Shown: positions 34,654 to 64,000, counted from the stretch's first letter. The stretch is DNA of 64,000 bases from Chlorokybus atmophyticus (GCA_009103225.1 RHPI01003788.1:294421-358420), one strand, 5' to 3'. The notes: generated from the letters alone by a model not told the origin. Numbers and translations: made by a program.

Positions 34654-34804
34654 TGTTAGCATGAGCATGTCTTGCACACTGCTCAGTCCAGTCAGCTTAC
34701 GAATTGGCTAAGGCATGAGCCTTGGAGATACCACTACTAGTATGAGCTGATATCGATCAGTCATGAGTCTGTAGCAGTTATCGAGTCCACTACGCGGAGT
34801 ATGA
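34654..34804 (+). repeat. 5' part of the split 5' LTR of copia family A, copy 2
   Basis: Begins TGTTAGCATGAGC and matches the reverse complement of 37233-37383. It stops at the TIR of the large element. Confidence 0.92.
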
Positions 34805-34834
34805 TGCATCTATCAAGTGTACCCCGATCCCCCC

Positions 34835-34941
<107 letters not shown>

Positions 34942-41853: not shown

Positions 41854-42229
41854 CCTATTGGTGGAGGACCCCGTGGAAGGTGTGGTGGACATTGATGGCG
41901 GGCCGCCAACATACGCGTACGGTTGATGCATGCATATGTTGCGTGGTGGGGCAGGAGTAGTAGTAATATGCGAAGCCCGTCACGGTGCTGTGCTGCGCGA
42001 CATGCGCACGGTGTGTGCGGCCACCCACGTTGGTGTCCCCTTCAAGGTAGCAATGGCCTCGCGAAGGTAGCGCGCTAGTGCCTGCTCTTTCTAACCGCTG
42101 CGCTGCTGCGGCCTGTTGCTCCGGAGTAGTAATATTTGAATCCACTCTGCCTTTTATGAATACGAGGCAGATTAAATTTGAGGGATTCCTTAAGTATTGC
42201 CTTTCCTTGACAAACTCGATTACCAAAGG

Positions 42230-42870
42230 CACACCCGTCCCTGCCAAGCTAGTCTTCTCGAAGTTGGTACTCGAGTTGAGTGGTGGACCGTAGGTGTTAA
42301 AGCCAAGGTGTCGGCGGACGCAGCAAGTGTTGAGCAAGTGTCAGCTGTTGTGCTTGCGACGGTGGCAGCTTAAGTAGCTGTACCAGAGGCAGACCCATCC
42401 CTGCCAACACCTAGTCTTTTCGAAGCTGATATTCGAGTTGAGTGGTTGACCATGGGTGCCAAGGCCAAGTTGCTGGCGGAGGCAGCAAGTGTTGAGCAAG
42501 TGTCAGCTGTTGTGTGCCTGCGGCGGTGGCAGCTTGAGTAGCTGTACCAGAGGCAGACCCGTCCCTGCCAACACCTGGTTTTTTTGAAGCTGGTACTCGA
42601 GTTAGTGGTTGACCATGGGTGCCAACGCCAAGGTGCTGGCGGAGGCAGCAAGTGTTGAGCAAGTGTCAGCTGTTGTGTGCCTGCGGCGGTGGCAGCTTCA
42701 GTAGCTGTACCAGAGGCAGACCCGTCCCTGCCAACACCTGCTCTTCTCGAAGCTGATATTCCAGTGTAGTGGTTGACCACGGGAGCCAAGGCCAAGGTGC
42801 TATTGGAGGCAACAAGCGTTAAGCAAGTGTTAGCTGTCGTGCCTGCGACGGCGACAGCTTGAGTGGCGGC
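42230..42870. repeat. Tandem repeat with a unit of about 164 bp, about 4 copies
   Basis: GTAGCTGTACCAGAGGCAGACCC at 42374, 42538 and 42701. Confidence 0.9.
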
Positions 42871-42899
42871 TGCGATATCGGCATGGCGCTTTACTTGTT

Positions 42900-44150
42900 G
42901 ACAATTGTACATGTGGCTCAAAAGGTTCAGGACTAATTGTTTGCAATTCGGGTACTCTTAAACAACATTGTATGTGTTCTTGTCGCTCAACTGCACATGC
43001 CTCAGGGTGGGGAATGTGTTTGAAGTGCTAATGTGGTTTTGAAGGTTCAGGACTGGTTTTTTTCAGTCCAAGCACCCAGGTGCAATACCGCATGTGGTCT
43101 TGCCACTTGAAAACACGTGTCTGGTGAGGCGCGAGTGTGCTTGAAATGCAAATCTATTCTTAAAGGTTTAAGACTAGTTGTTTGCACTTCAGGTACTCCT
43201 AAAAAATATTACATGTGTTCTTTCCACTCAACTGCACATGCCTTAGGGTGAGTGAGTGTGCTTGAAGTGAAATTGTTGTTTTAAAGGTTCAGAACGGCTT
43301 CTTTGCACTCCAGGCATTCTTGCACATGATTGCAGGTGGTCCTGCCACTCAAATGCAGGTGCTGGGGGGTGGGTGAGTGTGGTTGCAGTGCAAACATGGT
43401 TTTAAAGGTTTAAGACTATCTTTGCACTTCAGGTACTCTTGCACAATATAACATGTAATCTGCCACTCAATCGCATGTGCCTGAGGGTGGGTGAGTATGC
43501 TTGGAGTGCTATTGCTGCTTTGAAGGTGCAGGTCTCCTCTTTGCACTCCAAGCACTCTTACACAATATCGCATGTGGTGTTGCCACTCAATTGCACGTGT
43601 CTAATGGGACGCGAGTGTGCTTGAGAGTGCAAATGGGAACCTGACGGTTCACATGTGGTTTCTTTACACTTCAGATATTTATAAAAAATATCGCATGTGA
43701 TCCTGCCATTTAATTGCATGTGCCTGAAGGTGCGCAAGTCTGCATGAAGTGCAAATGTGCTTTTGAAGGTTCGCGACTAGTTGATTGCACTTCGGGTACG
43801 CCTGTACAATATTACGCGCGATCCTGCCACTCAATCGCATGTGCCTGAGGGTGGGTGGGTCAAGCTTATTGCTTTGGAGGTGGCCATAGGATTTGGACTA
43901 GTTCTTTGCACTTCAGATACTCTTGCACGATATTGCCTGTATTCTTGAGGCTCGACTGCATGTGCCTAAGGGTGCGCGAGTGTGCTTAAAGTGCAATTCC
44001 AATCCTGACAGTTAAGGACTAATTGTCAGCACTTTAGGTACTTTTGCACAGTATTGCATGTATTCCTGCCACTTAACTGCTTGTGCTTGAGGGTGGGTGA
44101 GTGTGCTCGAAGTGCAAATGTGGTCCCGAAATTTCAGAAGAGGTTCTTTG
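42900..44150. repeat. Satellite with a unit of about 120 bp, left part
   Basis: TTTGCACTTCAGGTACTC-like motif at about 43182, 43303, 43422, 43540, 43664, 43785, 43906 and 44027. Confidence 0.9.
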
Positions 44151-44599
44151 TGTTGATGGACTAGCATGCACATGTAGTTGAGGCAAGCATAGACACACAG
44201 AGACAGAGCTACCGCCACCAGAGCATACACAAGTCACATCACATTCATCTATTACAAGTTGTCCGCTGGTTCTTATACCAGCCAGTTACACACACGTCTA
44301 CGTTTGCAAGCACTGCGTAAGCTATACTCAGCCTTTTTACGCGCCTTAAGCTGCGTTGTCTTTCTTACAACCAGAGCGTTTCAACAAGCTCTCACACGCC
44401 TAGTATGAGTAAATATACGCGGAGATACGAAGCAGTTAGTAAGGCTCCTGTCTGGAGTCCGGAGTCTGGTCCGACGATGCCATCTTGCTAAGTCCGGACC
44501 TAGTGCTCGTCCTTACGACCTTCTACTCCTGTGTGGAGGGTCGATGCTGATTGTATGTAGGAATACTCTCAACACTCCCACGCGAGCAGCATGACCTCC

Positions 44600-45409
44600 A
44601 AAGCTTGCTCCTGTAGTCAAACACAGATGCCAAGTCCTGCGCAACAAGTCTTGAACTTGAGCGGTGACAATGGCTTTGTCATGAAGTCCGCCAGCATGCC
44701 CTCAGTGTTCCTATACTAGAACTCCACCTCCTTCCTGAGTGACTCTGTCACGCACAAAGTGATGCATGACATCAATGTGCTTCGTCCTTGCCGAGGCGAT
44801 AGGGTGCTTCAACAACGTGATGGCTCCTTGGTTGTCACAGTTGATGACAATGCACGCCATGGGGTGCTCCAAGTCTGCCATGAGCTTGCGAAGCCAGAGT
44901 GCCTCCTTCACTGCTGCTGCCGCTGCCATGTACTCAGCCTCTGATGTAGATGCTGCTGTTGTTGGCTGCAGCCTGCTGTTCCAGCTCACCACGCCTCCGT
45001 TCAGCTTGAAGACGTAGCCTGTAGTGGACCTCCTGCTGTTGAGGTCACCAGCAAAGTCCGAGTCGCAGTAGCCCTGCAACTTAGTGCTCCCGCTCCCAAA
45101 CTTGATGCCAACTGTTGCGCTCCCAGCAACATAGCGTAGTACTCCCTTTGTTGCTCTCCAGTGCTCTATGCTCGGTGCAGACATGTAGCGAGCAAGTACT
45201 CCCACAGCATGTGCAACATCGGGACGTGTGCACACTGCCAGATAGAGCATGCTGCCTACCAGCTCACCATATGGAAACTGAGCCTGGTCGAGTACCTCCT
45301 CATCTTTTGCCTTGATGAGGGCAGTGCCAAGTGCCAATGGTGTGGTCTTGGTCTTCGCTTCAGTGAGCCCGAACTTGGTGACGAGTCTTCTCACCATCTG
45401 CTCCTGACT
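44600..45409 (-). pseudogene. Copia B RT C-terminus and RNase H
   Basis: YGELVGSMLYLAVCTRPDVA; GYCDSDFAGD; RTKHIDVMHHFVRDRV. Continues the 51457 reading across the insertion (IKISQ|EQMVRRL). Confidence 0.9.
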
Positions 45410-46076
45410 TGTGACGGTGCTCGTGCCTTGTTACCGGTGAGTTGGTCCAATCCACAACCCTCTCACCAAGACACGGTATTCACACCGGAACCTTGCCCCC
45501 TCTGCCATGCACACACGCGCGCCCCGCCACTCGCGTACGCACGCGCATGCGCTCGAAGCTACACACCGACTTGTGCAGCGCCTTGGATCGTCACACAAGC
45601 AAGCACACACCGGTGGGCACACGCTAGCAACCCCTGCTAACCACCACCAAGCTTGCACACCAGAAACTAGGGAGCTAAAGGTTGTATTGCAAATTGTAGA
45701 ATGTCACTTTTATACCTACCAGTCTGCACATGCTACTGTCTAGACGATTCTAGCGCTAGACGGAACTAGAAGCTAAGATATTCTTGCAGAATCTTGTAGT
45801 ACACTTCTAGACCTTTCCAACGCACCAAAGATCTCCTAATTTGCTGCTCATATGGTCAAGTTATACTACTTGGCGCCAGGCCCTTCCAGAAATCTGGTCG
45901 AGCCCTTCTCGACTGGCCCTCCGTTTTCTGGCACCTTCCGGACTGGTCTTGGGGCCCCGGTCGATATCCGCGGCAGACTCATAACTCGCCGATATCCGCC
46001 ACAAGTCATTAAAAACATGTACCTTACAAATAAGGCCTAAAACGGCCATGAAAATCACAGAATTTGGCCTTGACTG

Positions 46077-49000
46077 TTACACTCCTCCCCCCCCAGGTGA
46101 GCTTCGTCCTCGAAGCTCGCGAGGTTGTCGTCGAGCAAGATAGGCACGCACAACGTCTTGAGCATTAGTCAAGTGTGCCTCTGGCTCCCAGGATGCTTCA
46201 TGCAACGGATAGCCCTTCCATTTCACTAAGAACTTGCGTACGCCATGCACAAACTTCTCACCAAGGATGTCTTCTACCTCCCACTCGGGTTCACCGTCTG
46301 TGCCAACTTCGGGGGGTGGCCTTTCTGGCGGTTGTCCTCGATGTGCTTTCAGAAGGGAGACGTGAAAAACGGGGTGCACACGCATGGTGTCGGGTAGCTC
46401 CAACTTGTACGCCACGTCCGAGATAACTTTGCTGACCTTAAATGGTCCCAACCAGCGTTCATTCAGCTTGCGAACTCCCGTACGCACCTGGACGTGCTTC
46501 GCGGAGAGTAACACAATGTCGCCTTCCTGAAACGTGAGGTGTCGGCGATGCGCGTCCGCGTACTGCTTCTGCCGATTTTGTGCCACCAATAACGCATCCC
46601 TAGCTGCCTTGTTAATGTCCGCGCACTTTGTAAGGAAGTCATTAGCTGCCTCCACACGCACGTCATGTCGTCGCGGTGTCCATGCCGTCAACGGTGTCAA
46701 TGGATGTTGCCCGTAGTTCATAAGGAAGGGAGTGACACCTGTGCTTGCATTGTGGTGGTTGTTGATCGCAAACTCAACCAACTCAAGCAGCTCCTCCCAA
46801 TTGTCTTGTCGCGCGTTAACGTAGCAACGCAGCATGTCCTCGATCACACGGTTGGCCCGCTCCGTTTGCCCATCAGTTTGCGGGTGGAATGCCGTGCTAA
46901 ACTTCAGTGTGGTACCCAGTGCACTATGCAGCGCCTCCCAAAACTTACTTGTAAAGCGCGGGTCGCGATCACTCACAATGCTTCGTGGTAATCCATGAGA
47001 ACGAAATTCATGCTTCACGAACAAGCGTGCTGCCTCCGGTGCCGTTCAAGACTTACTACATGGTGCCAAGCGTACCATTTTGCTGGTTTTATCGACGAAC
47101 ACAAGTATAGCGTCGTACCCTTCTTTTGTCTTTGGTAGCCCCGTGATAAAGTCCATGGTAACTTGCTCCCACTTGGACAATGGCACAGGGAGAGGTTGCA
47201 GCAACCCACCTGGCTTTTGGTTGCTTGCCTTCACCCTTTGGCATGCGTCGCACAACGCCACGTAGTCGCGCACATCGCGATGCATCTCTCGCCAGTAAAA
47301 ACGCTGTTTTAAGCTTGCCAAAGTCCTTTCCAACCCTTGGTGACCAGCAATGGGCACGTCATGAGCTTCCTTCAGCAACTTCACACGGATATGCGCGACG
47401 TTGGGGATGTACAAGCGCCCATGGTGCCACAGCAGCCCGTCGCGCAGTGACCAGTGCCCACTTGTGTCCGTAGCTGTATTTTCCAGCTCTTGCAACACTT
47501 TCATACCCTCCGTGTCTTCACGAAGCACTTGCCGAATCTGGTCGGTCCACTCGGGCTGCACTTGAGCGAGTGCCTCAATTGCATTAAGCCGGCTCAGCGC
47601 GTCAGCAACACCATTTGACGTACCGGGCTTGTACTTGATATCGAAGTTAAAAAGTTGAAAGAACTCAAGCCATCGAGCTTGTCTGCGACTCAGATGAGGT
47701 TGTGTTTGTAAGTACCTCAGTGGAGAGTGATCCGTCTCAAGCACGAACTTTTTGCCTTCCAAAAAACAACGCCATTGTCGTAGCGCCATGACTTGCGCTA
47801 AAAGTTCCTTCTCGTGCACGGGGTAATTCAGCTCCGCACCACTCATCTTCTTGCTGAAGAATGCTACTGGTTGAAGGCCGTTGCCATGGTCTTGCTGCAA
47901 AACAGCTCCTACGGCTGTGTCGGACGCGTCGCAAGCCAAAATAAATGTCTTTTCCATGTTGGGGTGAGCCAGGACTGGTGCCTCCGTCAGCGCCTTCTTC
48001 AACGCAGCAAATGCATGTTCCTCTGTTGCTGACCAGCTCCAATGCTTTCCCTTCTTGAGTAGGGTAGTCAAGGGAGCAGCTATGCGCGAAAACCCCATGA
48101 TAAACTTGCGATAATACCCCGCAAGGCCTAAAAAGGACATCACCTCCTTTACATTGGTCGGGGCAGCCCACTCGCGCACCACCTGCACTTTGTTGGGGTC
48201 CGGCTTGATGCCTTCATGCGACACAATGTGGCCTAGGTACTCCACCTCTCGAAGCAAGAATTTGCACTTTTGTAGCTGGGCGTACAACTTGTGTTCGCGC
48301 AAACGCTGCAACACGCGCCGTAGAAGTGCCACGTGCTCCTCCTTTGTTGTCGCGTACACCAAAATGTCGTCGAGGTACACGAGGACTCCCTTACCAATCA
48401 AGTCAGCAAAAACGCTGTTCATAAGCGTTTGAAATGTTGCCGGTGCGTTCGTAAGTCCGAAGGACATGACCAACCACTCGTAGTGCCCATAACGTGTGTT
48501 AAAAGCTGTTTTCTCCACATCCTCGGGCGCGATGCGGATTTGGTGATAACCTCCAGCAAGATCAAGTGTTGTGAAGTACTGCGCACCTTGCAATTGCTCC
48601 AGCAACTCGTCGATACGTGGGAGTGGAAAGCAATTCCTCTTCGTGATGTTGTTGAGAGCTCGGTAGTCGACGCACATGCGCAAGCTCCCGTTCTTCTTTC
48701 GTACAAACAAAATAGGTGCACCATAGGGGGACTTACTAGGCCTGATGTAGCCTCTTTTCAGCAAGTCCGCCACCTGCCTCTCGGCCTCTTCCAGTTCCAA
48801 AGGTGACAACTTGTATACGGGTCGATACGGTGGCTTGTGCACGCCCTCAATCAGCTCCACACGGTGGTCTACGCTCCGTGGAGGTGGTAGACCAGATGGA
48901 AGTCCGTCCACCATGATATCTTGGTATTCTTTAACAAGTTTACACACCTCGGGGTCCATAGTAGCCGTCTGAACATCGTCACTCAGCTCTGGTGCTGACT

Positions 49001-49660
49001 TTGCAGTGTTTTCGCGCACCACGCACAACCATGCAGCCTTTGCCTTCCGTGGAGACAATAACTTCCTCAATTGCACATAAGAGATCTGGGCAATTGTCGT
49101 ACCACCTAATTGTGCGTGCCGCGCCTCGATGACGTCCGATGCAGCTTGAATGGACTCTCCACCGTTTCGCTCGATGGTGAGCACGCGCTTCCTCCAATTG
49201 ATGGCTGGATTATGTTGCCATAGCCACGGTAGTCCCAAAATCCCATCAAACCCGTTCCGTAGGGTGATGCAGCAAAATCGCATGCTCTCCTTCATCTTCC
49301 CAATGCGAACGCACAACTCTTTGGTCATAAACGCAGCGCCATCACCTCCAGAGGGTGGCTCTCCATCAGCGAGCTTCACTTCACCTCCTCGTAATGACGA
49401 AAGCCAGCCGTAACGCCGCGCAATATCAATACTCATAAAGTTGCTGTTGGCACCGCTATCAATCATGAGCTTACACTCTCTCCATCGTCCTTGGTCATCG
49501 CAAATGTGTGCTCGAAGCCCGAAGTACTTTGTTGTCTCCTCGTTTGCATAACTCACCACCATTGGCGCGTTCAAAGCCATCTCCTCTTGCTTCTTTAATG
49601 GAAATGTCACAGCATCCGTCCGTGCATGAGGCTCCTTCCTATCCCCAGCAGAAGCCTCCT
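46077..49660 (-). pseudogene. Chromovirus pol (protease, RT, RNase H, integrase, chromodomain) with one frameshift at about 47030
   Basis: MIDSGA; LVYLDDIL; CDASD; HHCC-type zinc site; VSDRDPRF; QTDGQTER; GPF/VHPVFHVSLLK; EWEVEDIL...FLVKWKGYP...SWEP. Confidence 0.95.
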
Positions 49661-49663
49661 CAC

Positions 49664-50692
49664 CTACTGGGGAAAGTCGTTTTCCTGCTCCACGCCATTT
49701 TGCTCCATGGTGTTGACGCGACGATCACGGCGAGGGTTGCCATCCGGTGTTGGCCTTTGCGTGCTTCGTTTGGGGCATCCGTACGCCAAATGCTCCGTCG
49801 ACCCACACGCATAACACTTGCGCACACCTTTACCTCTTTCACCACGTCCGCCGTGCTTCGCCTCACTTCCATGTGTGTGTATGGCACCCACCTCCATTGG
49901 TGCAGGCCCAGAGTCAGCTCCACCTTTATTTGCAGGTGCTGAACTTGGTTCTCCTCGTCTCCATGCATGTTGAACGCCTCCCCGGGGCTGATCACCATGC
50001 CTTTGCCTCCAGTCAGTGTTTCTTGTGGTGGACTTGAAGTACAACGCGTCGAGACGCTCCGCGATGCGTATAGCCTCCGCAAGTGTCTTCGGGTCCCGTA
50101 GCTCCACTTCTTTACGCCCCAAAGGTTTTAAACCACGTGTATACCTGTCCAACTGCTCCTCCTCGGTCATATTGGGTATGGACATCACCAATCGCTGAAA
50201 CGCGGCCGTGTACGCCATCACCGACCCCATTTGCACAAGGGCTGCAAGTTTGTCGCGTGCGGCCTTCACGCTCTCAACGGGAACAAATTGATGCCTGACC
50301 TCCAGTGCCAACTCTTCCATGGTGGTCAATGGTAGCGCCAACCCGTTTGCAACACGCGTCTATCGATGCCTTCACCACACAAGTGCTGCACCTTCAAGCA
50401 ATGTCGCTGCAACCTCCACGTGCAGATGCGTGGGCACCTCCGTGAGCTTCAATCAAGACGATACTTGAAAAATCCATTCATCCACTGCATCTCCATCACG
50501 TTGACCCATGAATGGCTTGGGCTTTGGCACCTTCACATGCACGCGCGAGCTTGATGCCATGGGAATTTGTACACGCGTCATCGCATGCTCATACGCCTCG
50601 CGTTGTGCTTGTGCCGCCGCTTGAGTGTGATGAAGCTCTTCCCTCAGTGCCAAGATGGCAGCTTGAAGCTCTTCCATGCGAGCATCCTCCAT
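49664..50692 (-). pseudogene. Chromovirus gag with zinc knuckle (frameshift/stops near 50340-50455)
   Basis: VKVPKPKPFMGQRDGDAVDEW; QMGSVMAYTAAFQRL; CYACGSTEHLAYGC. Confidence 0.85.
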
Positions 50693-51456
50693 CTCCACTA
50701 ACACACTACACTCCGCTTCCGAATGAAAAGTGTAAACGCCCACACACTTCCTCTCTCACCTTCGTAAACCGTGCTCCGATACCAGTTGTGACGGTGCTCG
50801 TGCCTTGTTACCGGTGAGTTGGTCCAATCCACAACCCTCTCACCAAGACACGGTATTCACACCGGAACCTTGCCCCCTCTGCCAAGCACACACGCGCGCC
50901 CCGCCACTCGCGTACGCACGCGCATGCGCTCGAAGCTACACACCGACTTGTGTAGCGCCTTGGATCGTCACACAAGCAAGCACACACCGGTGGGCACACG
51001 CTAGCAACCCCTGCTAACCACCACCAAGCTTGCACACCAGAAACTAGGGAGCTAAAGGTTGTATTGCAAATTGTAGAATGTCACTTTTATACCTACCAGT
51101 CTGCACATGCTACTGTCTAGACGATTCTAGCGCTAGACGGAACTAGAAGCTAAGATATTCTTGCAGAATCTTGTAGTATACTTCTAGACCTTTCCAACGC
51201 ACCAAAGATCTCCTAATTTGCTGCTCATATGGTCAAGTTATACTACTTGGCGCCAGGCCCTTCCAGAAATCTGGTCGAGCCCTTCTCGACTGGCCCTCCG
51301 TTTTCTGGCCTTCCGGACTGGTCTTGGGGCCCCGGTCGATATCCGCGGCAGACTCATAACTCGCCGATATCCGCCACAAGTCATTAAAAACATGTACGTT
51401 ACAAATAAGGCCTAAAACGGCCATGAAAATCACAGAATTTGGCCTTGACTGTTATA

Positions 51457-54400
51457 TGACTGATCTTGATTGTGCGTGCAGCCCTGTCGCGCTCAATCAC
51501 CATGCCAAGGAACCACTTGGCCTCTCCAAGATCACGAACTGAGGATGCTTGCAGAGCAAGTTTCGTCTCCTGCAGGTGGTGCACCTGCCTGGCGGTGATG
51601 ATGATATCATCAACATACACGAGCAGCCAGACCTTATGGTCTGCATGGATAAAGAGCCCAGAGTCTGCAGAGGATGCGGTGAAGCCAAGTGCCTCCAGCT
51701 CCTTGGTGAGCTTGATGTGCCACATACGCGGTGCCTGTCGCAGCCCGTACAGAGCCTTGATCAGCTTGCACGCTGTGCCTCTCTCCCCTTCTTCATATCC
51801 ATGTGGTTGCTCGATGAAGATCTCCTCCAGCTCTCCGTAGAGGAAGGCAGTCTTCACATCCAGATGATGCAGCTCTAGGTCTTCAGCAGCAACCATAGCT
51901 AGCAGTGCACGGAAGGTGGTATGCTTACTTGCAGGTGCAAACACTTCGTTGAAGTCCACACCTTCCTGCTGCAAGAAGCCCTTTGCCACCAGTCTTGCCT
52001 TGTAGCGTTCAATGTTGCCCTGACCATCACGCTTCACCTTGAAGACCCATTTCACTAGAATGGTCTTCACTCCTTGCGGTAACTGCTCCAGTGACCAAGT
52101 GTTGTTGGCATTGAGTGACGCAATCTCCTCGTCCATAGCACGCTGCCATTGCTCCGCATCTGGTGCTAACAATGCCTCCTCGTAGGTGCTTGGCTCCTCA
52201 TTCTGCACACTGGCGACGTGTGCCTTGTGTAAGAAGTCAGGTGCCTGTCTCTCCCTCACTGGGTATCTTCGAGCTGCGTGTTCCTGCTGTTGGTACGGCT
52301 CCTCTTGGCTTGCTACAGCTGAGTCCTGCTCACCCTTGTTGTTGATGATGGCCTTGCCTGTAGCCTCCACTGTTTTAGGATGCTCCGGCTGTGCTTTATC
52401 TTCAGGAAAGAAGCCTGCTTCTGGTTGTGATAATCCCTCGTGGAAAACCAACTCTCTGCTCACAATGATCTTCTGAGTGTCCTCGAGCAAGATCCTGTAA
52501 GCCTTGGAACCCGGTTCATAGCCAACGAAGATGCCCTTCTTGCTGACCAGCTCCAGCTTGTGCCTGAGCTGTTTAGGCACTAGTGCATATGCCGTGCATC
52601 CAAATACACGCATACCACTCACATCTGGTGTGGCTCCAAAGAAGTGCTCCCACGGAGTCTTTTGCTCTGAGCTCACCGGAGACCTGTTGCGGATGTAGTT
52701 GGCAGTGAGTACCGCCACCTTCCACAAACTGTCTTCCATCTTTGTGTCTTTGAGCATGGCTCGAACACGCTCCAGGAGTGTCCTGTTGAGGCGTTCAGCT
52801 GCTCCATTCTGCTGCGGGGTGTAGGGTGCCGTTGTCTCGTGGCGTATGCCCTTGCTGGCGAAGAACTCCTTCAACTCCTTGTTGATGTACTCCCCTCCTC
52901 GATCACTCCTCATTGCCTTCATCTTGTTGCCAGACTGCGTCTCCAACAAGGCCACGACTGTGCGCACAGCTCCAGCAACTTCTGACTTCAGTGTCAGCGG
53001 AAAGATGACGGATAGCTTGCTGCAGTTGACGAGGAATGTAGCAAAGTACCTGACCCCTCCCTTCGCCACAATGCGCATAGGGCCACAGACATCCATGTGC
53101 ACAAGCTCGCAAGGATGCTGACTGCTAGAAGAGGATGATGGGAATGGCATAGCATGCTGCTTTGCAACCAGGCATGGTTCACGAAGTGCATCTAATGCAT
53201 TCGTGAGTTCTTCTGTGCTCAGATGGATGCCCTTGACCATCTTCTCAACGACAAGGCGAGTGAGGTTGACGTAGCTGAGATGCCCGAACCTTTAATGCCA
53301 CAATGTTGGCGACTCCTTGTCCTTCACCATCATGGCTTGAATGTCAATGTCCTGAGGGTGCTGCTCCACGTGGTAGAGCCCTCTCGGATCAGCGATTCCA
53401 ACCATGTGCACGACCCCATCAAGGATGACTGTGCAGCCACCCTTCCGAAATAGGATCTTCGCGCCTAAGCGCTCCGCAACCCTCACAGAGAATAGACTCG
53501 CAATAGCCTTAGGAACATGCAGGACATTGCGTAACAACACCTCGCGTAGTGTGTTACCAACCTTGCACTGGAGTCGTACGTTGCCAACTCCCTCAGCCAC
53601 CAGTACTTCACCACCGAAGCCCGCCACCTTGATTGTGGACGTCAGCTTCTTGTAGCCCTCCATCACCTCCTTGTTTGGTGTGAGATGACGATCGCAGCCA
53701 GAGTGCACCACCCAGAAAGCTGTGCTCGCCCTCGAACTGGATGTAGTGAAGGCGACATGTTTCTCCTTGTGTTGGTGCTCGTTGCCGCTGTTGCTGGTGC
53801 TTGCTCTAGGTTGCCCCTGATGTTTCTTCCTACAGTCCTTCACAATGTGCCCCCTTCCAACCACACCAGTGGCATGTGAGGTCTTTGTGACGAGGATTGC
53901 CTGGCTTGTTGCCCTTGTACTTCTCTTCATGGTTGCTCTTCTTTGCGTGCTTGCCGGTGTAGAAGGCGACGGCATCCGCTTGCTCGTCCTTCTTCACAAC
54001 CCTCTGCTCCACGGTGAGCAGCTTCGGTAGCACATCGTCCAACGTCAACTCGGATGATGACGTTTCCAGCAGGGTTGCGACGACCTCATACTCTGCTGGT
54101 AGCCCTGCAACAATGGCCAGCACTACCTCCGTCTCCCCCATGTTGTGGCCGACGTTGATGAGGTCCGCCCACAGCTCTCTCGCGCGCGCAACATACTTTG
54201 TGATGGGTTCTGCTGCCTCCTTCCTGAGTGCGCTCAGCTGCTTGCGTAGCTGCAATTTTCTGGCGTTGTTCTTGGCTCTGAAAACGGCTGATAGCTTTTC
54301 CCAAGCTTGTCTACCATCTTCACATGCAGTGAGCATGGGAAAGTGATGCGGTTTGCTGTTCAACACAAGCAAAGAGTGTGCTTCTGCTGAATGCTCTGAC

Positions 54401-54579
54401 CACACAGTGTTCGCTCCTGGTGCTGGTGGTGGTGCCTTCGGATCAACGTACTTCCACACCTTCTTGTGGATGAGCAAGGCCTTGATCTCCACGCACCATG
54501 TATTGTAGTTGTCGGTGTCCAGCTTTGCAATCTGCCCCTTGTCGTAGGTCGCCTCCATCTTTGTCGTGCCTGCCTTCAC
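51457..54579 (-). pseudogene. Copia B gag, protease, integrase and RT (frameshifted)
   Basis: LDTDNYNTW; CHWCGWKGH; LVHMDVCGP; MRSDRGGEY; QQNGAAER; LLVYVDDIII. Confidence 0.92.
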
Positions 54580-55095
54580 TTGCAGTTGACACCCAAGGCT
54601 CTGCTACCAACAAGCTACCGTAGTGTAGAACTACTATGCACACAAGCTAGTCTCACACTCCTCAAGCGTAGTGTGGGCCCATAACCTGTTGAAGGACTAG
54701 CATGCACATGTAGTTGAGGCAAGCATAGACACACAGAGACAGAGCTACCGCCACCAGAGCATACACAAGTCACATCACATTCATCTATTACAAGTTGTCC
54801 GCTGGTTCTTATACCAGCCAGTTACACACACGTCTACGTTTGCAAGCACTGCGTAAGCTATACTCAGCCTTTTGATGCGCTCTAAGCTGCGTTTTCTTTC
54901 TTACAACCAGAGCTTCTCAACAAGCTCTCACACGCCTAGTATGAGTAAGTATACGCGGAGATACGAAGCAGTTAGTAAGGCTTCTGTCTGGAGTCCGGAG
55001 TCTGGTCCGACGATGCCATCTTGCTAAGTCCGGACCTAGTGCTCGTCCTTACGACCTTCTACTCCTGTGTGGAGGGTCGATGCTGATTGTATGTN

Positions 55096-56480
55096 TTTGC
55101 ACTTCAAGTGGTTCAGAAGGTTTAGGACTAGCTGTTTGCACTTCAGGTACTCTTGCACAATATTGCATGTGTTTCTGCCACTCAACTACACGTGCCTACG
55201 GTTCATAACTAGTTTTTTGCACTTTAAGCACTCTTGCACAATAACACATGCAATCCTGCCACTCCGGTGCATGTGCCTATTGGTGCGCGAGTGTGCTTGA
55301 AGTGCAAACCATGTTTTGCTGGTTCAGGACTAGTTGTTTGCTCTTCGTGTACTCTTAAACAACATAGCAAGGTTCCTGCACCTCAATTGCACATGCCTGA
55401 GGGTGGGTGAATGTGGTTGAAGTGCTAACGTGGTCTTAATGGTTCAAAAGTAATTCTTTGCACTCAAGGCACTCTTGCACAATATCGCATGTGGTTTTGC
55501 CATTCAAGTGCATGTGCCTGGGGGTAGGTGAGTCAAGCTGATCGCTTTTTAGGTGGCCATAAGCATCCGGACTAGTTTTGCACTTTATGTACTAGTGCAC
55601 GTTAATGCATCTGATGCTGCAATCCAATTGCATATGCATGAGGCTCACGCGAAGTGAGTATGCATGGAGTGCAACTCTCTTATTCTAAAGGTCAAAGAAG
55701 GGCTCCAAGTTGTTCCTTGCAGATCTGATACTCTTGCATAATAATGAATGTGATTTTATCACTGAATTGCACGTGATAGTGGTGGGTGAGTGTGCCTAAA
55801 GTAAAATATGAGTGCTGTCCCACTCGTGCACCCAATCACATGTGATCCTACATGAGGATGGGTGACTATGTCTGCATGCATAGGCGGTGTCATGAACACC
55901 TCTGGTACTCTTGCACAACACTCAATGTGACCCTTCCACTTGAATGCATGTGCCCAAGGCTGGGTAAGTTAAGCTGATTGCTTGAAAGGTGCGCACAAGC
56001 ATCTAGACTCGTTCTTTGCAATCTAGGTATTTTTCTACAATATTGCCGGTGATCCTGCCACTTAATTGCATGTGACTAAGGGTGGGTGAGTGTGCTCGGA
56101 GTGCAAATTTATTGCAAAGGGTTCAGAACTAGTTCGTTGCACTTCAAATACTCTGCACAACACAGCATGTGACACCTAAATGCATGTGCCTGAGGGTGGG
56201 TGAGTCAAGCTGATTGCTTGAAAGGTGGGCACAAGGATCTGAACTCATTCTTTGAAGTCCAAGTAATTTCCTACAGTATTGCAGGTGACCACAACACTCA
56301 ATTGCGTGTACATGAGGGTGGTTGAGTGTGTTTAAGGTGCAAATCTGGTTTTGAGGGTTCGGGACTAGTTCGTTGCACTTGAGGTACTCTTGCACAACAC
56401 TGCATGTGACCCTGCCACCTAATTGCATGTGCCTGAGGGTGGGTGAGTCAAGCTAATTGCTTAAAAGGTGGGCACAAGGA
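55096..56480. repeat. Satellite with a unit of about 120 bp, right part, with A/B dimer alternation
   Basis: Same unit as 42900-44150. The B variant (GAGTCAAGCTGATTGCTTGAAAGGTG) alternates with the A variant from about 55960 to 56470. Confidence 0.88.
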
Positions 56481-56914
56481 TTTACTATGTTTGAATGCAT
56501 GCATTGGAGGTGACCTGAAGTGCACAGTGCACACTTTTGCCACTCTCAGGGAAGGGTGAGTATTTTGCTTTGTTGAGTGTGTCTAGTTGCTCAAGCCGTT
56601 TGCAGATGTTAATGAACTTGCATGTGTATATACTAATAGCTAAGTAGTTAAGCGAACATACGCATGCACCAGTAGCCATGCACGCGGTTGCCTGAATGTC
56701 CAACAAACATGTGGAATGCTAGCATTGTTGCCTAACTCTGTCATGTCAGTGGTGTACATTTTGCAGTGCACATGGCCATGGAACTAATCGACCATCTACA
56801 ATCACGTAGTTGTATGCCGCCGTGTGATGTGTGGCCATGCCAACCAGCGGCACTTCTATTTGCTGAAACATTGACGCAACTCCAGTCGCAGCATTGAACA
56901 CACCTGTCACAATC

Positions 56915-56917
<3 letters not shown>

Positions 56918-56951
<34 letters not shown>
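56918..56951. repeat. (GA)n microsatellite
   Basis: About 17 GA units followed by a G run. Confidence 0.9.
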
Positions 56952-56962
<11 letters not shown>

Positions 56963-57136
56963 GCCCTGAGAGCTGTGCTCACCAAGCATGGTGTTTGTGG
57001 TCACATGTGTCTGTAGTGAATGAGAAGTGCCTGCTCGTTCACCTGTTGCACACACCCGCAAGTGAACACATTGAGCGTTAAGCCAGTGCAAGCGAGTGTT
57101 GCTGTGCAGGCAGCACCAGCAGATAAAGCCCTCAGG

Positions 57137-60100
57137 CTAAGGCTTACCGTGGGTACGTGTCTGACTTGCCGGTGCTGCACCATCATGATTGACACTAGCT
57201 TCGGCTTCTCCACCTGGCCCAACTGCACACAAGCTATTCAGCATGCAAGGGTAACCATCAGCAAGTGTGTGTGGGGGGGGGGTCTCACCGGGTGGGGGGT
57301 GAGCAGCATCAATGTTGCACTGTGAGTTGTTCTTGGCCGCCGCTGCTGCAGCCTTCTTGCTCCTGGTTTCAGCAGCTTTGCGTGCTCCTCTGCTGCGATT
57401 CGCTGAAACAACTTGCAAGTGCTCAGTGTACCACCTGACTTCATCCGCTCCCCCCACCAGCAGCTGCTTGGCCAGCATGTCCGCAAACGCCTGAACTTGG
57501 GAACCGTCACCATCATGTTTGCCAAGCAGCCCGGCGGTCTTAGCAGCCTCGGCAATCCTGGTAGATGGCGGTGTTGGTGGATCACAGCTTGCACCTTCCG
57601 CTTCAACCTTCTCCCACACTTGCTGTGCCGTTAAGTATTGCCCTGTGCAGATCGTCCTGTTCCATCGCTTGCATTCCTCACAACCAATGCCGCCGTATGG
57701 CCGAGCTAGATCTATTGTTGGCCAAGGAAAAAAGCCATATGAGGGACCACCAGCAAACCATCTTGTTGCTGATGCTGGCGGCCCCGCCATGCACTCGGGG
57801 TGTGGACAACCAGGCTTGTAATAACAGCGCAGCATGAACACATACTAGCATGGAACATCTGCTCTTTGTTCTTGGGCGTATTTGTGGTTGTTCAGCACAA
57901 GCAGCACCTTATTAAAATGTGCCGCCAGGTTTGGTTGCAGACGTGCCAAACGCTGCCGGTCAACAGCGCCACTCCCATACTTCTTGCCCTCCATAGTACC
58001 ACCCTTTAGATACGCCAACAAGTAGGCTCTGCGCCGCAGCAATGCTTGAGCACTTGCATCATTGCAGCCTTGTACCAGCTTGATGCTTGTTTTGCCGAAG
58101 GAGCAACCATCAACCCTCTCTATGTACATCTCCGTTGCTGCCTGCATGTTGTTGCTATACATGGCTTCGTCCAGCTTCTTGTCTCGCATGTTGTTTCCTT
58201 CCAATGTGGATGTGATGAACAAGCCTGCATGTCCTTGAGCCAAGCAACCGTATTGCAGCTCGGTGCGGTTCTTGTATGAACAGCCTGCCTCCCTTGTTGT
58301 CAACAAAGACACACGCTTCGCATTGACAAAATGACGCTGAGCAAAGTGGAACTGCACCTCCACATGGGATGGGCCTTCATCGCTTCCGCCGTCGGCGCGA
58401 TAGTGAATATACTCTTTCTCCCCACCTGTGGCAGTGTTGAGAACGGCTGCTTTGGCCACGTGCAAGGAATTGACCATATCCATATCGGCTGCATGCTGTG
58501 CTGGACACTTCTCATAACTGCCAGTAGCTTTAACAACACCGACCGCCACTTCCGTTGTGGTCTTTGTGGCCGGAAAGTTGTACGTATTGGTCTGCAACAC
58601 GGATGTATACTTGTTCACATAGTCTGCGCGGACAGTCAAAGCCAGTTCGTCGCGCAGCATCGATGTAGGGTGCTTGCTGTTGACAGCACAATCCAATCGA
58701 AACCCTGCCGCGTCGTCACGCCCAAGCACAACCTTGTCCTGGCCATCCTCTAGCTGTAGCCAGTCCAGTCCATTGTAGAGTGCAGCAGACCAGTGCGTAT
58801 CTGGGTTGGCTTTTAATGAAGCCTTTGGGCATGCGACGTGACGCAATTGCTGCCAACCCTTTGTAACGAGCAGCTGAACAGCGTCGCTTATTGCGCGCAA
58901 CGCATAGCTGTACGACAGTCCCATAGCTGTTATGCTCACCGTAGTGGCTACGCAGCAGCTTCGGCATACACATGAACGTCATCTTCTTCTCAACTCGCCT
59001 GTTGCCGTTGAAGATCAGAAGGCCTGTCCGACGCCAGCGATCAGCACCCACACCCGCTGTGCGGCACAACACCTCCATAACATCTCCAACGTCTGGGTGT
59101 CTGCGCTCGAAAGCTTGTCTCCTTCCCGTTGCAGAGCGTGCACGTCCCCACATGCCAAACTCAGCCACAGCAACTGCAATACCCTTTGTACGCTGGCGCC
59201 GCAACCTCCGCCGCTGCTTGGCCACCATTGCGCTGAACCTAGGGTCTGCTACTGACTGAATCCCAGTAAAGTTGATGTCCTCATTAGAGTCATCAAAAAT
59301 GTCGCCTTGCACAGCAGCTGATGCTGTAGCCACTCTCTCTTGCCTTTCGTCTTCAATCACACGAGTAGCTTGCAGTAGCTGTGCTTGAGCAAACTCCAGT
59401 GGTGTCTCTTGTAGCAAAGCATGGCCATGACGCAGCACACCCTCAATATCTTCCTTCAAACTCAACCTCTCTTCGAGTGCAGACACGAAGCGGCCCCAAT
59501 GACAACCCACGTCAGCTATCAACCTTAACAAGTCAGCGTCTGCTACACCAACTGGCTCGAGTGTCAAAGATGGTGTCGAAGCAGCCTCGTCCACTTCCAG
59601 TTGTTCTCTTCTCAAGTCGTCAGCCTCATCATCGCTGCTATCAAACTGTTCAATACCCAACGCCTGCAACAGTATCTTATCTTGTTCGTGATACACCTTG
59701 TTGAAAACCTCGCGAACCTCCATGCTTGATGCTAACGCCTGCTAGATCTTTCGTCTGCGTGTGGCCATCTGAGTAAGCCCATACTCCTCCAATGCTCGCT
59801 TATCACCCATGCCGCTGGTCGCTGCAAACATCAAGCCTTGCTGGTCTGCTTCGGTTGATGACAGATCACACAACAGCCTCAACAGTGGCTTGGACAAGCA
59901 TGGTGAAGTAGTCACTCTCTCCTTGGCAACAAAGCTGGTGTACAAACGCTGCATCTTCAAGTAGTCTACGCCTTCATACTTCTCCACCACCCAGATTGAC
60001 CCATGCAACATCAAGGTCACAACGGGCAGCTGCAGCACCGCTCGTCTCGTGTTGTACGACAAGTATGCACCAGTTGTTGGTGACAGCAGATCATGCACCT

Positions 60101-61716
60101 CACGCAATGGTACAGCGCCTTGGTCTAACACTCGGTTCGCAACGCGCACGAGTCCATCACATCGGTGACAAGGAGCCTGATGCTTGGCCAAGGAATGAGC
60201 TGAAGAAGCTCGCATGTAGTCCTTCAAAGATGTGCCGGTTGCTATGGATACGTACACGCCGGGCCCAACACACTGTTGCTGTGCATCATCCAAGCGTCTG
60301 CCCTTCAACGCCCAGTACGACAACATGATGCCCTGCTGCATGCTGCCCCCACCTGGACACAACCATGTGGTGGATGCAGCTACTCCAAAAAATGCTCTTC
60401 CTCATGGTCAATGTCATCTTCACACTGATATTGCCCACTATGGCAAGCCTCGTGTTGTTGCTCATCTCCCAGTGCATCCTCAACCTGCTCCTCTTGCTGT
60501 GCGTCAACATGAGTCTCTATGTTGACATTCACTTCTTCCATAGCAGTGTCACTGAGTGATGATGTGTCTGACTGTGTGGTGTCTGCAACACCACTCCTCA
60601 CAGTGTGCTCAAGATCCCGCTCACAGCAATCGTCCTTGTCGGTGCAGCTGTCGCTGACTGGGGTGCGTTCACACGACTGCGCACGCTGAGCTTTGGCCTT
60701 GCGCTGGGCATTTGACCTGTGCTTGGTTTGCAGCATGGCAATCTGCAACTCAACTGCCTTGATTTCGCTGCTGTAGTCCAGAATCTTTGCTGTGTTTTCA
60801 TTGCTTTCTCGTGCTCACCTTGCTGAGACTGAGCTTCCACTGCATTGGCCGCCAGTTGCTTGGCCTTCTTGACCTCTTCAAGCTGCTCTTCCAAATGCAG
60901 CAGATGTGTTGCACAATGATCTGCTGTTGTGTATTGACGCTTCTTCCTCTGCACTGCATGCGCACCAGCTTCGCGTTGTTGAAGCACTACTTTTGAGCGT
61001 GAGCCACTGCGCTTCTTGAAGTCATATGTGCGACTAGCCAGCATGCGCACCAGTACCATCAATAACCCTCTGTGTGCTGCAAGGCCTGGGTACTTCATGC
61101 ATAGCAAGATGCCAGCAAAATTCATAGCTATCTCATAGTCCTTCAGGTTGTCTCGCTTGTACAACACTGCACCTTTAGCTGCTTTTACGTCATCTGATGA
61201 CATGACCTCCGGCAAGCTTTCAACAGCAGTCAACAGCTGCTCAGTCTCCTCGACAGTAAGGCTCGTGGGCTGCTTGGAGAGTTGGCGCACAACAAGCTTC
61301 ACAACATCACCACTCGGAGCAGCTGCAAAGTCTGTGCTGCCTTGATTGGACACTCTCTTGTACGTCATGAACGCAGTGAGACTGCTTTGCACACCCTGAG
61401 TTCGACGTGTTGCTGCCATGACGGATGATGACGTGACGGTAGGGGACACGGCATTGCGCATCATGCCAGCTGGCGTGGCCGCGTTGAACTTCATTTTCTG
61501 CAGCAGTCCCAACATGCGCTTCACATCGAACTCCTTCATCTTCAAGGCGTCATCATGTAAGATCTCTTGCAGCTCAGTGTCTTCAGCGTCTAACAGATCC
61601 TGCACCGACTTCACTCTCAGCTCCTGTAGCTGATGTTCGTACTCCATGCACGCGCATGACTCAAGGAAGTCAGCCATGGCAGGCAATGCGGCCATGGTTT
61701 CCTGCATGAAGGTCAA
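57137..61716 (-). pseudogene. Large transposase: SAM-like N-terminus, coiled/acidic linker, Zator/TP36-like DDE core, Cys-rich C-terminus
   Basis: Consecutive ORFs 60598-61716, 60380-60748, 59742-60362, 58716-59723, 57845-58939 and 57137-57841, joined by in-frame stops or frameshifts. Motifs GRDDAAGFRLD, ADGGSDEGPSH, REAGCSYKNRTE and CYYKPGCPHPEC...CEEC..CTGQY. Confidence 0.75.
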
Positions 61717-62850
61717 GCGAATGACTGAGAGTTGAGCGCTGTTCAGCGGTGACAGTGCTGCTTGCTAGCAAGCACATGCATGCAGAACACCAACACAAGT
61801 GGATGCTGCTGAGGATGACGGTGGTGACCATACTATAGATGGCAGGCATATGCATGCAGGACTTGAGATGACGACTGCTGTTGACGATACACATGTAAGC
61901 ACGCATATGCAAGTGCACACGCCCAAGAACAACAGCACAAACAACTTGATAACCATCTTGATCATTGTGGCAGACGATGAGATAAAAAGGCAAGTGGTGA
62001 AGCACATTCAGCTGTAGGTGTTGTTCACTTTAATCAATAATATTCCTACCAAGCCCATGCCCTCAATTGAAGTATTACTGCAACATTACCAATTGCTCAT
62101 CGTGTGGACGCAGCTGCAACAGCGTATGTTGCCTTGCAAACAATGTCTCTGACTGTTTACAATAACGTGCTAACTTGCACCTGTAATGGTGCAGCCGCAA
62201 TCTGAACTAGCAGCAGTCAGTGCAATGGACTTTAAGTAAATACTATACAGCACAAGAAAAGTAGTAGCAACGAGTATAGCTACATGCAAGTGGATATGGT
62301 TGTGGTTGCAGCAAGTAAAGTGAGCAACAACATGCATGTGACGCTGTACTGTTAGATCAACAAACATGCCACTGAGTGGCCTTAACTGCGTGCTCCAAGC
62401 AGAAGCGAACTTGCTGACAGTGAGTGAAGCAATGTGTTGCTTGACAAGCGTACCTCAAGACTCAACGCCTTGTGATGTCAATAGTCAGACCAGCTCCGCC
62501 CACGTCAGCTCCAATCCCACCGCCGCCGCCGCCGCCGCCGCCACTTCCTGCTCCTTCTTCTTCAGGCTGAGCTGGGTCACACGTGCTTTCCCGCCATTTT
62601 TGTGCCCGAGGGGGGTCGGCCGGTAATTGTAAAGGAGTTGGGCGGGGGATGTGCAAGTGCCCGACCCAATGCTGCAAGATGTATAGGGAATTGTAGTCAG
62701 CCCCACCCCTCATGTATCGGAGATGATGGGGCCTTACAAACAGGCCGTTTCCGACACTGTGGGGCATTGTGGGGCAGAATTCCGGCCCATGGGGCAATTC
62801 CCCACACTCGCCCCATGCGGGTGGGTATCGAGGTACACTTGATAGGTGCA

Positions 62851-63208
62851 TGACCAAGCAGGAGACTCCGGACTTGCTCATGAGGCTGGCGCAGCCTGAC
62901 GCAGCCAACGCCTTGGAGAACGGCGAGAACTCCGCGTATATTTAGCCTTAGGAGACGTGGCTTAGCTTGTTGGAAAGCTTTGGCTGTAAGCTAGACAATT
63001 AAGCTTACATAATGGCAATCCGCTGAGTATAGCTTACGCGGTGCTTGCTAAAGTAGACATGTGTAGTCTGGCTGGTATAAAGGCCAACAGAATTAACAAG
63101 TTGTTGGTTCGGGTGAAACCCCTTTGCAAGCCTTGTGTGCACGCTTTGTGTGTATGTTCTAGTGCATGTGTATGCTGTAGTTGGCCAGCGCTAGCTCAGT
63201 GTTCAACA
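62851..63208 (+). repeat. 3' part of the split 5' LTR of copia A2
   Basis: Matches the reverse complement of 36877-37235 and ends TTCAACA. Followed by PBS GGTTATGGGCCCAC at 63209-63222. Confidence 0.93.
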
Positions 63209-63314
63209 GGTTATGGGCCCACACTGCTAGTGGTTCAAGAGAGGACACAGCAACTAGTGGAAAAGCTGAGCGGAACTGCTATTTGCAGAAGACCTCTGAC
63301 ATAGGCGTGACAAG

Positions 63315-64000
63315 ATGGCAGAAGATGAAGACTCCAGCGTCAGGTTGTTGGTGGCACCTCTAGAACTGGAGAACTACAGCACATGGAGCATAAAGATGAA
63401 GGCGCTCTTGAAGCACAAGGGATTGTGAAAGTATGCCGATCCCAACGGTAACGCACCTGTAGAGGGTACGCAGAGTGTGTGGTTGGAGAAGAGTGAAAAG
63501 GCATTGCATTGCTATTCTTAAACGTGAAGGATCACCATCTCGTGATGCTTGATGAGTGTGAGCATGCAAAGGAAGCGTGGCAGAAGCTGGCAAATACATT
63601 CAAAGCAAGCAACAATGCAAGGAAGCTGTTGCTGAGACGGCAGCTGAACGTGCTGAAGATGGAGTCAGCGGTTCCTATCTCCAAGTACGTGAGACGAGCA
63701 AGGGAGCTGTGAAAAGACCTCACTTTAATAGGCGCGAGGTGAAGGAGGTGGAGCTGGTTTGGGCTATCCTCTCCGGTCTTCCTGAGGAGTACGACATGGT
63801 GGTGACCGTGCTTAAGACGCCAAGGCAAGAACTCAAGCTCAATGTGATGCTGCCCATGCTGCGTCAACAAGAAGAGAAGACAGGCAGGAGCTCCCTTCAT
63901 CCCTTCCTGACAAGGGATGAAGCAGATTCGGTGGCGTTTGCTGCTTTAAGCTCAAAGAAAGGAAGTCAGGGTGGAGGAGGAGGCTCGTACAACGGTGGCA
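63315..64000 (+). pseudogene. Copia A2 gag (decayed, runs off the window)
   Basis: MAEDEDSSVRL..., NVKDHHLVMLDECEHAKEAWQKLA, near-identical to the A1 gag but frameshifted. Confidence 0.92.

Follow-up and report, generated by a model that had tools for sequence, protein, structure and literature searches.

A probable Zator-type DNA transposon with a broken DD43E transposase gene in the streptophyte alga Chlorokybus atmophyticus

What is encoded by six abutting open reading frames (ORFs A to F) on the minus strand of a Chlorokybus atmophyticus contig? They lie in a window of 64,000 nucleotides (RHPI01003788.1:294421-358420 of GCA_009103225.1, the whole stretch analysed; positions are counted from its first letter). 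An original prediction, made from the sequence alone, had read them as one transposase of about 1,500 codons at 57137-61716. The six ORFs are pieces of one broken gene, and the region is very probably the transposase gene of a dead Zator-type cut-and-paste transposon from the IS630/Tc1/mariner-related 'ITm' group. As a dead mobile element it is ordinary, but for its unexpected host and an N-terminal module resembling that of the animal NGFI-A-binding (NAB) co-repressors.

The gene occupies about 61707 to 56741 on the minus strand and comprises approximately 1,600 codons, with two short introns near its 3' end (Table 1). The prediction of a single gene is borne out, and its extent is exceeded: the frame is open from 61764 and is spliced on to a stop at 56741. 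By frame arithmetic, ORF A, ORF B and the pair C/D stand in three different frames, C and D sharing one and E and F sharing one. The frame changes three times along the gene (A to B, B to C, D to E) and is interrupted by two in-frame stops; about two frameshifts and two or three stops had been counted before. ORFs C, D, E and F are colinear with residues 4-990 of a protein family (phmmer) and ORF A is linked to the gene by a profile of animal sequences (see below), in agreement with the earlier joining of the six ORFs into one long protein.

A search with ORF E recovered 66 proteins, 40-50% identical and with E values as low as 3e-70, from large eukaryotic contigs; none of the proteins (0 of 66) carries a Pfam catalytic domain. 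P0072, a near-full-length member of 1,036 residues, finds at least 299 proteins, typically of about 1,040 residues and many with a C-terminal PHD finger; ORF C is the start of the part common to these database proteins. Some clusters at 90% identity contain as many as 358 sequences, a sign that the family is repetitive. The motifs RDDAAGF, ADGGSDEGP, SYKNRTE, GTVVQLCVARNKRR, NPDTHWS, QHAAD and EGPSHVEVQF of the window are the most conserved blocks of this real family (E 1e-70 to homologues) and are thus far beyond chance. The predicted catalytic motifs RDD-A, DGG-DE and SY-N--E are all among the window's motifs, and the further blocks named in the original prediction do occur in unannotated animal proteins, the ESM Atlas clusters being mostly from Cnidaria and Rotifera. 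ORF D contains the blocks GVGADRWRRTG and SYGTVVQLCVARNKRR. Invariant blocks of the family alignment are NRDDAAGFRLD, TDYVNKY, LQTTSYNF, KNPAQHAAD, RVDGASDEGPSH.EVQ, SSGSSYLNRVELQNG and FIPSTL, followed by a CC....C.HP.C / GGP / RPWG..C..C...C.GH cluster and then a W..HL..V..NR.RGA.KAA.TR helix. ORF F shows the same order, with the conserved Cys/His cluster (RCYYKPGCPHPEC ... GGP ... RPYG..C..C), PPS and the helix; the Cys/His cluster predicted after the core is therefore real and conserved in the alignment. In relatives the helix, which lies at 57340-57420 in ORF F, gives weak homeodomain matches (L007 residues 453-487, 0.0056; a precomputed PF00046 match in P0133), and it may be a DNA-binding helix.

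By sequence, the core found nothing in Pfam, NCBIfam or the PDB when single pieces, 56 members and the family profile were searched with HMMER; the window's six pieces gave no Pfam match worth noting, and ORF E had no sequence match in the PDB. The fold was approached by modelling. The AlphaFold2 (AF2) model of the window's ORF E core, built with 55 homologues, has a pLDDT of 82.4 and a pTM of 0.82, and its order of elements is beta-beta-beta-alpha-beta-alpha-beta-alpha, as in RNase H-like transposases. VIA-align against 48,161 chains ranked Metnase first (Z 10.4, 173 aligned residues, root-mean-square deviation (rmsd) 3.7), followed by Mos1 (10.2) and Sleeping Beauty (9.2), with IstA, retroviral integrases and TnsB next at Z of about 8. 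The Foldseek rows were weak (best E 0.018) and were largely DDE transposases and integrases, with Mos1 and TnsB leading. In the ESM Atlas, searched by shape, the family's own clusters (Cnidaria, Rotifera) came first and the bacterial ISAzo13 family PF07592 thereafter, with TM scores of 0.56-0.58 by query and 0.46-0.71 by target over 216-225 aligned residues. With language-model features PF07592 was first among the named families (0.84-0.86), and unnamed clusters from Mucoromycota reached 0.91. The model and the structural matches agree in supporting the RNase H-fold DDE core that had been predicted. The acidic residues of the candidate triad (D76, D183 and E227) are invariant in the family alignment, and all three are intact in the window. 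Their spacing is D-(~107)-D-(43)-E, the second interval being 43 in 138 of 142 proteins.

The solved structures closest to the core model are those of Tc1/mariner (Mos1, SETMAR/Metnase and Sleeping Beauty; Z 9.2-10.4, 171-181 aligned residues, rmsd 3.7-4.3), in which strands and helices follow one another around the acidic triad as they do in the model. They differ in that identity is 7-8%, the signature is DD34E/D rather than DD43E, the target-site duplication (TSD) is TA rather than 3 bp, and the window's protein is four to five times longer. Pfam DDE_1, DDE_3 and Transposase_1 had no match among family members. ISAzo13/TP36 (PF07592) is the closest named family by predicted structure and language-model features; unlike the family studied here, its bacterial proteins have 250-400 residues and lack all the accessory domains, and there is no similarity at the HMMER level. 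No true prokaryotic copy of the window's family was found. A scan of viral contigs yielded no relatives, tblastn of the core against plasmids gave no match, and no ISAzo13 gene was seen in the first 50 kb of the Aromatoleum plasmid NC_006823. Collections of prokaryotic genomes contained only two matches, both in contigs of metagenome-assembled genomes (MAGs). These contigs, L007 (CBDBMG010000003.1, 'Nitrosopumilaceae archaeon') and L008 (CBDBCZ010000018.1, 'Nitrospirales bacterium'), are 0.93 and 2.77 Mb long. Each contains a complete copy of the eukaryotic transposon family, bounded by terminal inverted repeats (TIRs) and with a TTA/TAA flank and a PHD finger. On L008 there are, besides, a (CA)n microsatellite, an ORF for a C2H2 zinc finger and one for a SAM domain. 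Both are most likely contigs of eukaryotic hosts that were mis-binned.

The ends of the element were located through its animal relatives. On contig L001 the gene lies between inverted repeats of 47 nt, and a second copy on the contig begins to match exactly there. L004, L005 and L006, from other assemblies, possess TIRs with the terminus of L001, TGCACCTATCAATG...CCCC, and TIR length in the four animal elements is 33-56 nt. Once the terminus had been fixed by comparison of these elements their TSDs became readable; all four have perfect 3-bp duplications, TAA three times and TTA once. The window has the terminus twice, once rightwards from 34805 and once leftwards from 62850, and TGA flanks each. 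The window's inverted ends begin TGCAYCTATCAAG, and 26 of their first 30 bases agree. The outer flanks rejoin as ...GCGGAGTA[TGA]CCAAGCAGG, equal to two intact copies of a long terminal repeat (LTR) elsewhere in the window, which read ...GGAGTA CGA CCAAGC and so have CGA at the insertion site. Since the flanks rejoin into one intact LTR, the element spans 34805-62850, or 28,046 bp. A check suggested with the original prediction, whether homologues sit between TIRs with 3-bp TSDs, thus came out positive for the four animal elements and for the window's own copy. Directly inside one TIR, at 34822-34950, there is a poly-C tract of about 130 bases with one N, and in animal TIRs, too, the terminus is closely followed inwards by stretches rich in C or G (CCCC...GGGG). 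The inverted repeats 54670-54960 and 62930-63225 were rejected as TIRs; they are opposite-orientation LTRs of neighbouring retroelements.

The Zator superfamily of eukaryotic DNA transposons, with Zator-1 of Branchiostoma, was reportedly introduced by Bao et al. in 2009. We equate PF07592 with what used to be called 'Transposase_36', or 'TP36'. Zator is said in the literature to derive from TP36 (PMC7386202). For Zator-1 of amphioxus, TIRs of 33 bp and TSDs of TAA or TTA are published (PMC12905397), so the family's relatives share with it the cut-and-paste type, the short TIRs and the same 3-bp duplications. Further likenesses are a DDE transposase nearest to bacterial TP36/PF07592 and to Tc1/mariner, and a catalytic domain without a Pfam model, Zator RNase H domains being described as lacking a Pfam counterpart and as abundant in Rhizophagus (PMC5751038). 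Hosts in both cases are animals and Glomeromycotina, the main hosts of Zator being given as fungi and animals (bioRxiv 2021.09.26.461848), and the Mucoromycota clusters of the language-model search fit the reported Rhizophagus abundance. The window differs in its host, a streptophyte alga, and in its TSD; no mention of Zator together with Chlorokybus was found in the literature searched. PIF/Harbinger resembles the animal relatives in a 3-bp TWA TSD and differs in its fold neighbours; no DDE_Tnp_4 (PF13359) match was found in 56 members at E up to 10, and no second, Myb-like ORF was seen.

Several points weigh against a dead Zator-type element. Z of about 10 and TM of about 0.57 indicate a common fold and nearest neighbours, not family membership; HMMER gives no sequence-level match to PF07592; and the TSD of the window is TGA, not the TWA of the animal copies and of published Zator-1. 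In addition, none of the five breaks (0 of 5) is covered by the contigs from read runs, which leaves room for assembly errors. Membership rests on fold, neighbours, TIR, TSD and host range. Of the Zator/TP36 reading in the original prediction, the fold, PF07592 as nearest named family, the TIR and the TSD are supported.

It is quite improbable that the family is instead a separate, unnamed superfamily of the IS630/Tc1/mariner-related group, a 'DD43E' lineage merely Zator-like in its TSD and TP36 kinship. Such a status would accord with the failure to match Pfam, NCBIfam or the PDB by sequence, with a Zator comparison made by description, and with the very large protein, whose accessory CIDE-N or SAM-like, NCD2-like and PHD domains were not found described for Zator in the literature searched. 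It is opposed by TAA/TTA TSDs and short TIRs exactly as in published Zator-1, by a nearest prokaryotic family that is the one from which Zator reportedly derives, and by animal and Glomeromycotina hosts in agreement with published Zator surveys; moreover, a multi-copy family so widespread is unlikely to have been missed by Repbase curators.

The stop between C and D, the leftover base at the D-to-E junction and the TAG between E and F all lie in conserved, alignable sequence and are therefore lesions, not introns; the leftover base follows the F codon of RRMPKGF and precedes the L codon of LKANPD. The remaining two frame shifts fall in a non-conserved linker, where a possible B-to-C intron of 31 nt was dismissed for its short length. 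Contigs from three public runs match the window at 99% or more, the RNA label of the run X1 contig being only a guess. A 741-nt contig of run X1 skips both introns of Table 1, each time with GT..AG on the gene's strand. The stop of ORF F (57137-57139) is inside intron 2, and the frame continues to 56741. The last exon contains a (GA)n microsatellite at 56918-56952 and has no Pfam match to the PHD finger (PF00628); the first CxxC and the His are missing. Contigs from two runs cover 61319-61703. The copy is dead but still transcribed; two stops and at least one frameshift interrupt its conserved sequence, and it would no longer be able to make transposase. One short run X1 contig has a third joint, skipping 57799-57927 (129 nt, 43 codons) including the TAG at 57845-57847. 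This stretch was rejected as an intron: its GT..AG stands on the plus strand and the gene on the minus, the contig has only 30 letters on one side, and conserved residues would be lost. Antisense splicing, a deletion allele or an artefact could each account for the skip.

An intact gene, or a domesticated and expressed host gene whose stops and frameshifts are assembly errors or introns, is a very unlikely alternative. The closely matching run X1 contigs with two canonical splices on the gene's strand, the intact catalytic triad and most motifs, and the lack of any unbroken contig across the five breaks would suit it. Three of the breaks, however, are within conserved alignable sequence and cannot be introns, the PHD finger is undetectable and a microsatellite occupies the last exon. 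The gene lies between TIRs with a TSD, amid a nest of retroelements, its terminal branch is seven times the median (see below), and an exact-product look-up with ORF D returned no identical gene product on record.

Table 1. Coordinates of features in the window (gene orientation is minus)
Feature	Position	Strand	Remarks
ORF A	60598-61716	minus	First of six abutting ORFs
ORF A, first part	61492-61677	minus	Possible SAM-like helical domain, weak lead
ORF A, second part	60859-61176	minus	NCD2-like segment, YDFKKRSGSRSK, coiled-coil start; residues 181-286 matched by profile
ORF B	60380-60748	minus	Acidic low-complexity linker, third frame; Ser-rich or acidic linker in relatives
ORF C	59742-60362	minus	Cys/His-containing; family residues ~4-205, E 5e-24 (phmmer)
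In-frame stop between C and D	59742-59744	minus	Within alignable stretch
ORF D	58716-59723 (gene part 58818-59723)	minus	Pre-catalytic region; family residues ~210-510, E 3e-43
D-to-E frameshift site	58817	minus	Single leftover base where relatives have one codon
ORF E	57845-58939 (core 57848-58816)	minus	Predicted RNase H-fold DD43E catalytic domain; family residues ~520-810
Candidate triad D76	58712-58714	minus	ORF E numbering; follows first strand pair
Candidate triad D183	58391-58393	minus	ORF E numbering; follows fourth strand
Candidate triad E227	58259-58261	minus	ORF E numbering; starts helix
In-frame TAG between E and F	57845-57847	minus	VPC*YVF versus LPxxYIF of relatives, residue before YIF
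ORF F	57137-57841 (gene part 57148-57841)	minus	Family residues ~815-990, E 8e-29
Intron 1	57223-57288 (66 nt)	minus	GTGAGA...CAG; contig of run X1
Intron 2	57043-57147 (105 nt)	minus	GT..AG; contig of run X1, depth 13.5
Last exon	56741-57042	minus	Cys-rich tail (IDCDRCVQCCDWSC...) where relatives have PHD finger
TIR, 3' side in gene orientation	34805-34834	plus	Starts TGCATCTATCAAGTGTACC; first 12 bases match animal TGCACCTATCAATG
TIR, 5' side of gene	62821-62850	minus	Starts TGCACCTATCAAGTGTACC
TSD TGA, 3' side of element (gene orientation)	34802-34804
TSD TGA, 5' side	62851-62853
Nested LTR retroelement	36877-41853	minus	LTRs ~36877-37383 and 41343-41853, 95% alike; 5-bp TSD CCTAT
Transposon internal sequence	41859-44150		163-nt units 42187-42841; 121-nt units 42914-44124
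Second nested LTR retroelement	44151-55094	minus	LTRs 44151-44558 and 54687-55094, 97.5% alike; TSD (C/N)TTTG
Continuation of 121-nt array (236-nt period)	55100-56481		Downstream of gene

The N-terminal third of the gene, ORFs A and B, had no match among 204 family proteins (phmmer). For ORF A no homologue was found in a word search or in a full HMMER search of 1.84 billion representatives, and tblastn of both ORFs against the retrieved loci was blank. The segment just upstream of the transposase ORF nevertheless passes Pfam NCD2 (PF04905) in two animal assemblies, at 4.5e-8 (33.6 bits) and 2.6e-7 (31.2 bits) with a cut-off of 25 and with profile positions 45/56-125 matched; a third copy is weak. 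The animal modules end in Y-x-F/Y-K-K..SRSK and then a coiled coil; ORF A has YDFKKRSGSRSK in matching context (E 9e-4). When a profile of six animal modules was run against the window's 1,379 six-frame open stretches, ORF A was the sole match (E 5.9e-10). As this match is to ORF A alone, in the right order and on the right strand, ORF A belongs to the transposase gene. Directly against Pfam NCD2 the window's ORF A gave no match, its link being through the profile of animal modules alone. The idea that ORFs A and B are no part of the transposase, as an unrelated upstream ORF or chance open frames, is very unlikely: the empty word, HMMER and phmmer searches would favour it, and the profile result speaks against it, as do the motif and coiled coil contiguous with the transposase in one open frame of P0145 and the contigs of two runs over the start of ORF A.

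The predicted SAM domain at the extreme N-terminus stays a weak lead. The first ~80 residues of ORF A match SAM_TNK at E 0.065 (13.7 bits, cut-off 25) and SAM_KSR1 at E 0.067 (13.6 bits, cut-off 22.5), so no Pfam threshold is reached, and the single-sequence AF2 model of residues 1-110 is one long helix (pLDDT 66), uninformative for SAM. Language-model scores for ORF A against SAM_NCD1, SAM_1/2, SAM_TNK and SAM_LFY are 0.75-0.83, the first 120 residues scoring best against SAM_NCD1 clusters. Ahead of the NCD2-like part, one animal copy (L002) has a CIDE-N domain at 3e-5, above the Pfam threshold. The first exon encodes a domain of about 90 residues in several animal copies (L002 4329-4857; L001 7324-7593; L004 4408-4716; L006 4220-4522), those of L001, L004 and L006 being alike mutually and without a Pfam match. 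Within the family the extreme N-terminal domain seems exchangeable, being CIDE-N-like in animals and possibly SAM-like in the alga. At 8998-9550 of L001 a Ser-rich linker is encoded by a coding tandem DNA repeat with a register of ~36 nt; the window's counterpart is the acidic linker of ORF B.

NAB co-repressors combine NCD1 (SAM-like) and NCD2. Two animal modules pass the NCD2 threshold and ORF A aligns to the NCD2-like modules of animals; on the other side, only the C-terminal two-thirds of NCD2 are matched, the NCD1/SAM part is a weak lead, the animal copies carry CIDE-N and not SAM at the very N-terminus, and NAB proteins contain no transposase. It is rather unlikely, though conceivable, that the N-terminal module (NCD2-like segment plus small oligomerisation domain) is homologous to the NAB NCD1-NCD2 core and older than animals.

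The order encoded by the gene would be a small helical, possibly SAM-like domain, the NCD2-like segment, a coiled coil and an acidic linker, then the Cys/His-containing pre-catalytic region, the RNase H-fold domain, the Cys/His cluster and the basic helix, and at the end a degenerate Cys-rich tail in place of the relatives' PHD finger. An intact family protein would bind the conserved TGCACCTATCAA termini, excise the element and reinsert it, cutting with a 3-bp stagger. Oligomerisation may be the role of the N-terminal modules (SAM-like here, CIDE-N in animals, coiled coil) and chromatin targeting that of the PHD finger. The element inserted into a retroelement LTR, duplicating TGA, with two LTR retroelements landing inside it later.

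The transposon's own sequence amounts to about 12 kb, including ~3.6 kb of tandem repeats. The nested retroelement at 36877-41853 is of the same LTR family as the LTR split by the transposon; since this family was both split by the transposon and later inserted into it, their periods of activity overlapped. A 121-nt satellite-like array is cut in two (42914-44124 and 55109-56470) by the 10.9-kb LTR element, in which a further LTR element is nested at 45409-51454. The stretches 34653-34801 and 62854-64000 are two halves of one LTR and adjoining retroelement interior, split by the transposon. Genome annotation should treat 34.8-62.9 kb of the window as a single transposon nest, not as host genes.

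A tree was built from 113 catalytic cores (a quick tree with a midpoint root, in which the placement of long branches is unsure). In it the window's sequence has a terminal branch of 1.75, the median being 0.25, and joins no clade, standing outside every other row. The long branch fits a long-separate lineage, pseudogene decay or both. As the algal copy is the most divergent and lies in no animal clade, recent transfer from animals has no support, and the horizontal spread raised in the original prediction is not indicated; its own deep branch argues for old presence over recent transfer.

The host is new, as are the precise ends with the empty site, the terminus common to alga and animals, the DD43E signature and the NCD2-like N-terminal module. 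Published surveys describe Zator as rare and mainly from animals and a few fungi, and a copy in an early-branching streptophyte alga, its ends and empty site both checked, widens this host range. Hundreds of 'hypothetical proteins' in animal assemblies gain an anatomy: a conserved terminus, a 3-bp TWA/TGA TSD, a DD43E core, a Cys/His cluster, a PHD finger, and an N-terminal CIDE-N or SAM-like domain with an NCD2-like module. If these readings are true, the 12-base terminus, kept from alga to animals at ~45% protein identity, would mark a very old and tightly constrained recognition of the ends by the transposase. The NCD2 link is a testable idea on the origin of NAB co-repressor domains; if it is true, NAB proteins would stem from a piece of a Zator-type transposase that was domesticated, or the transposon would have taken up the module very early and carried it between kingdoms.

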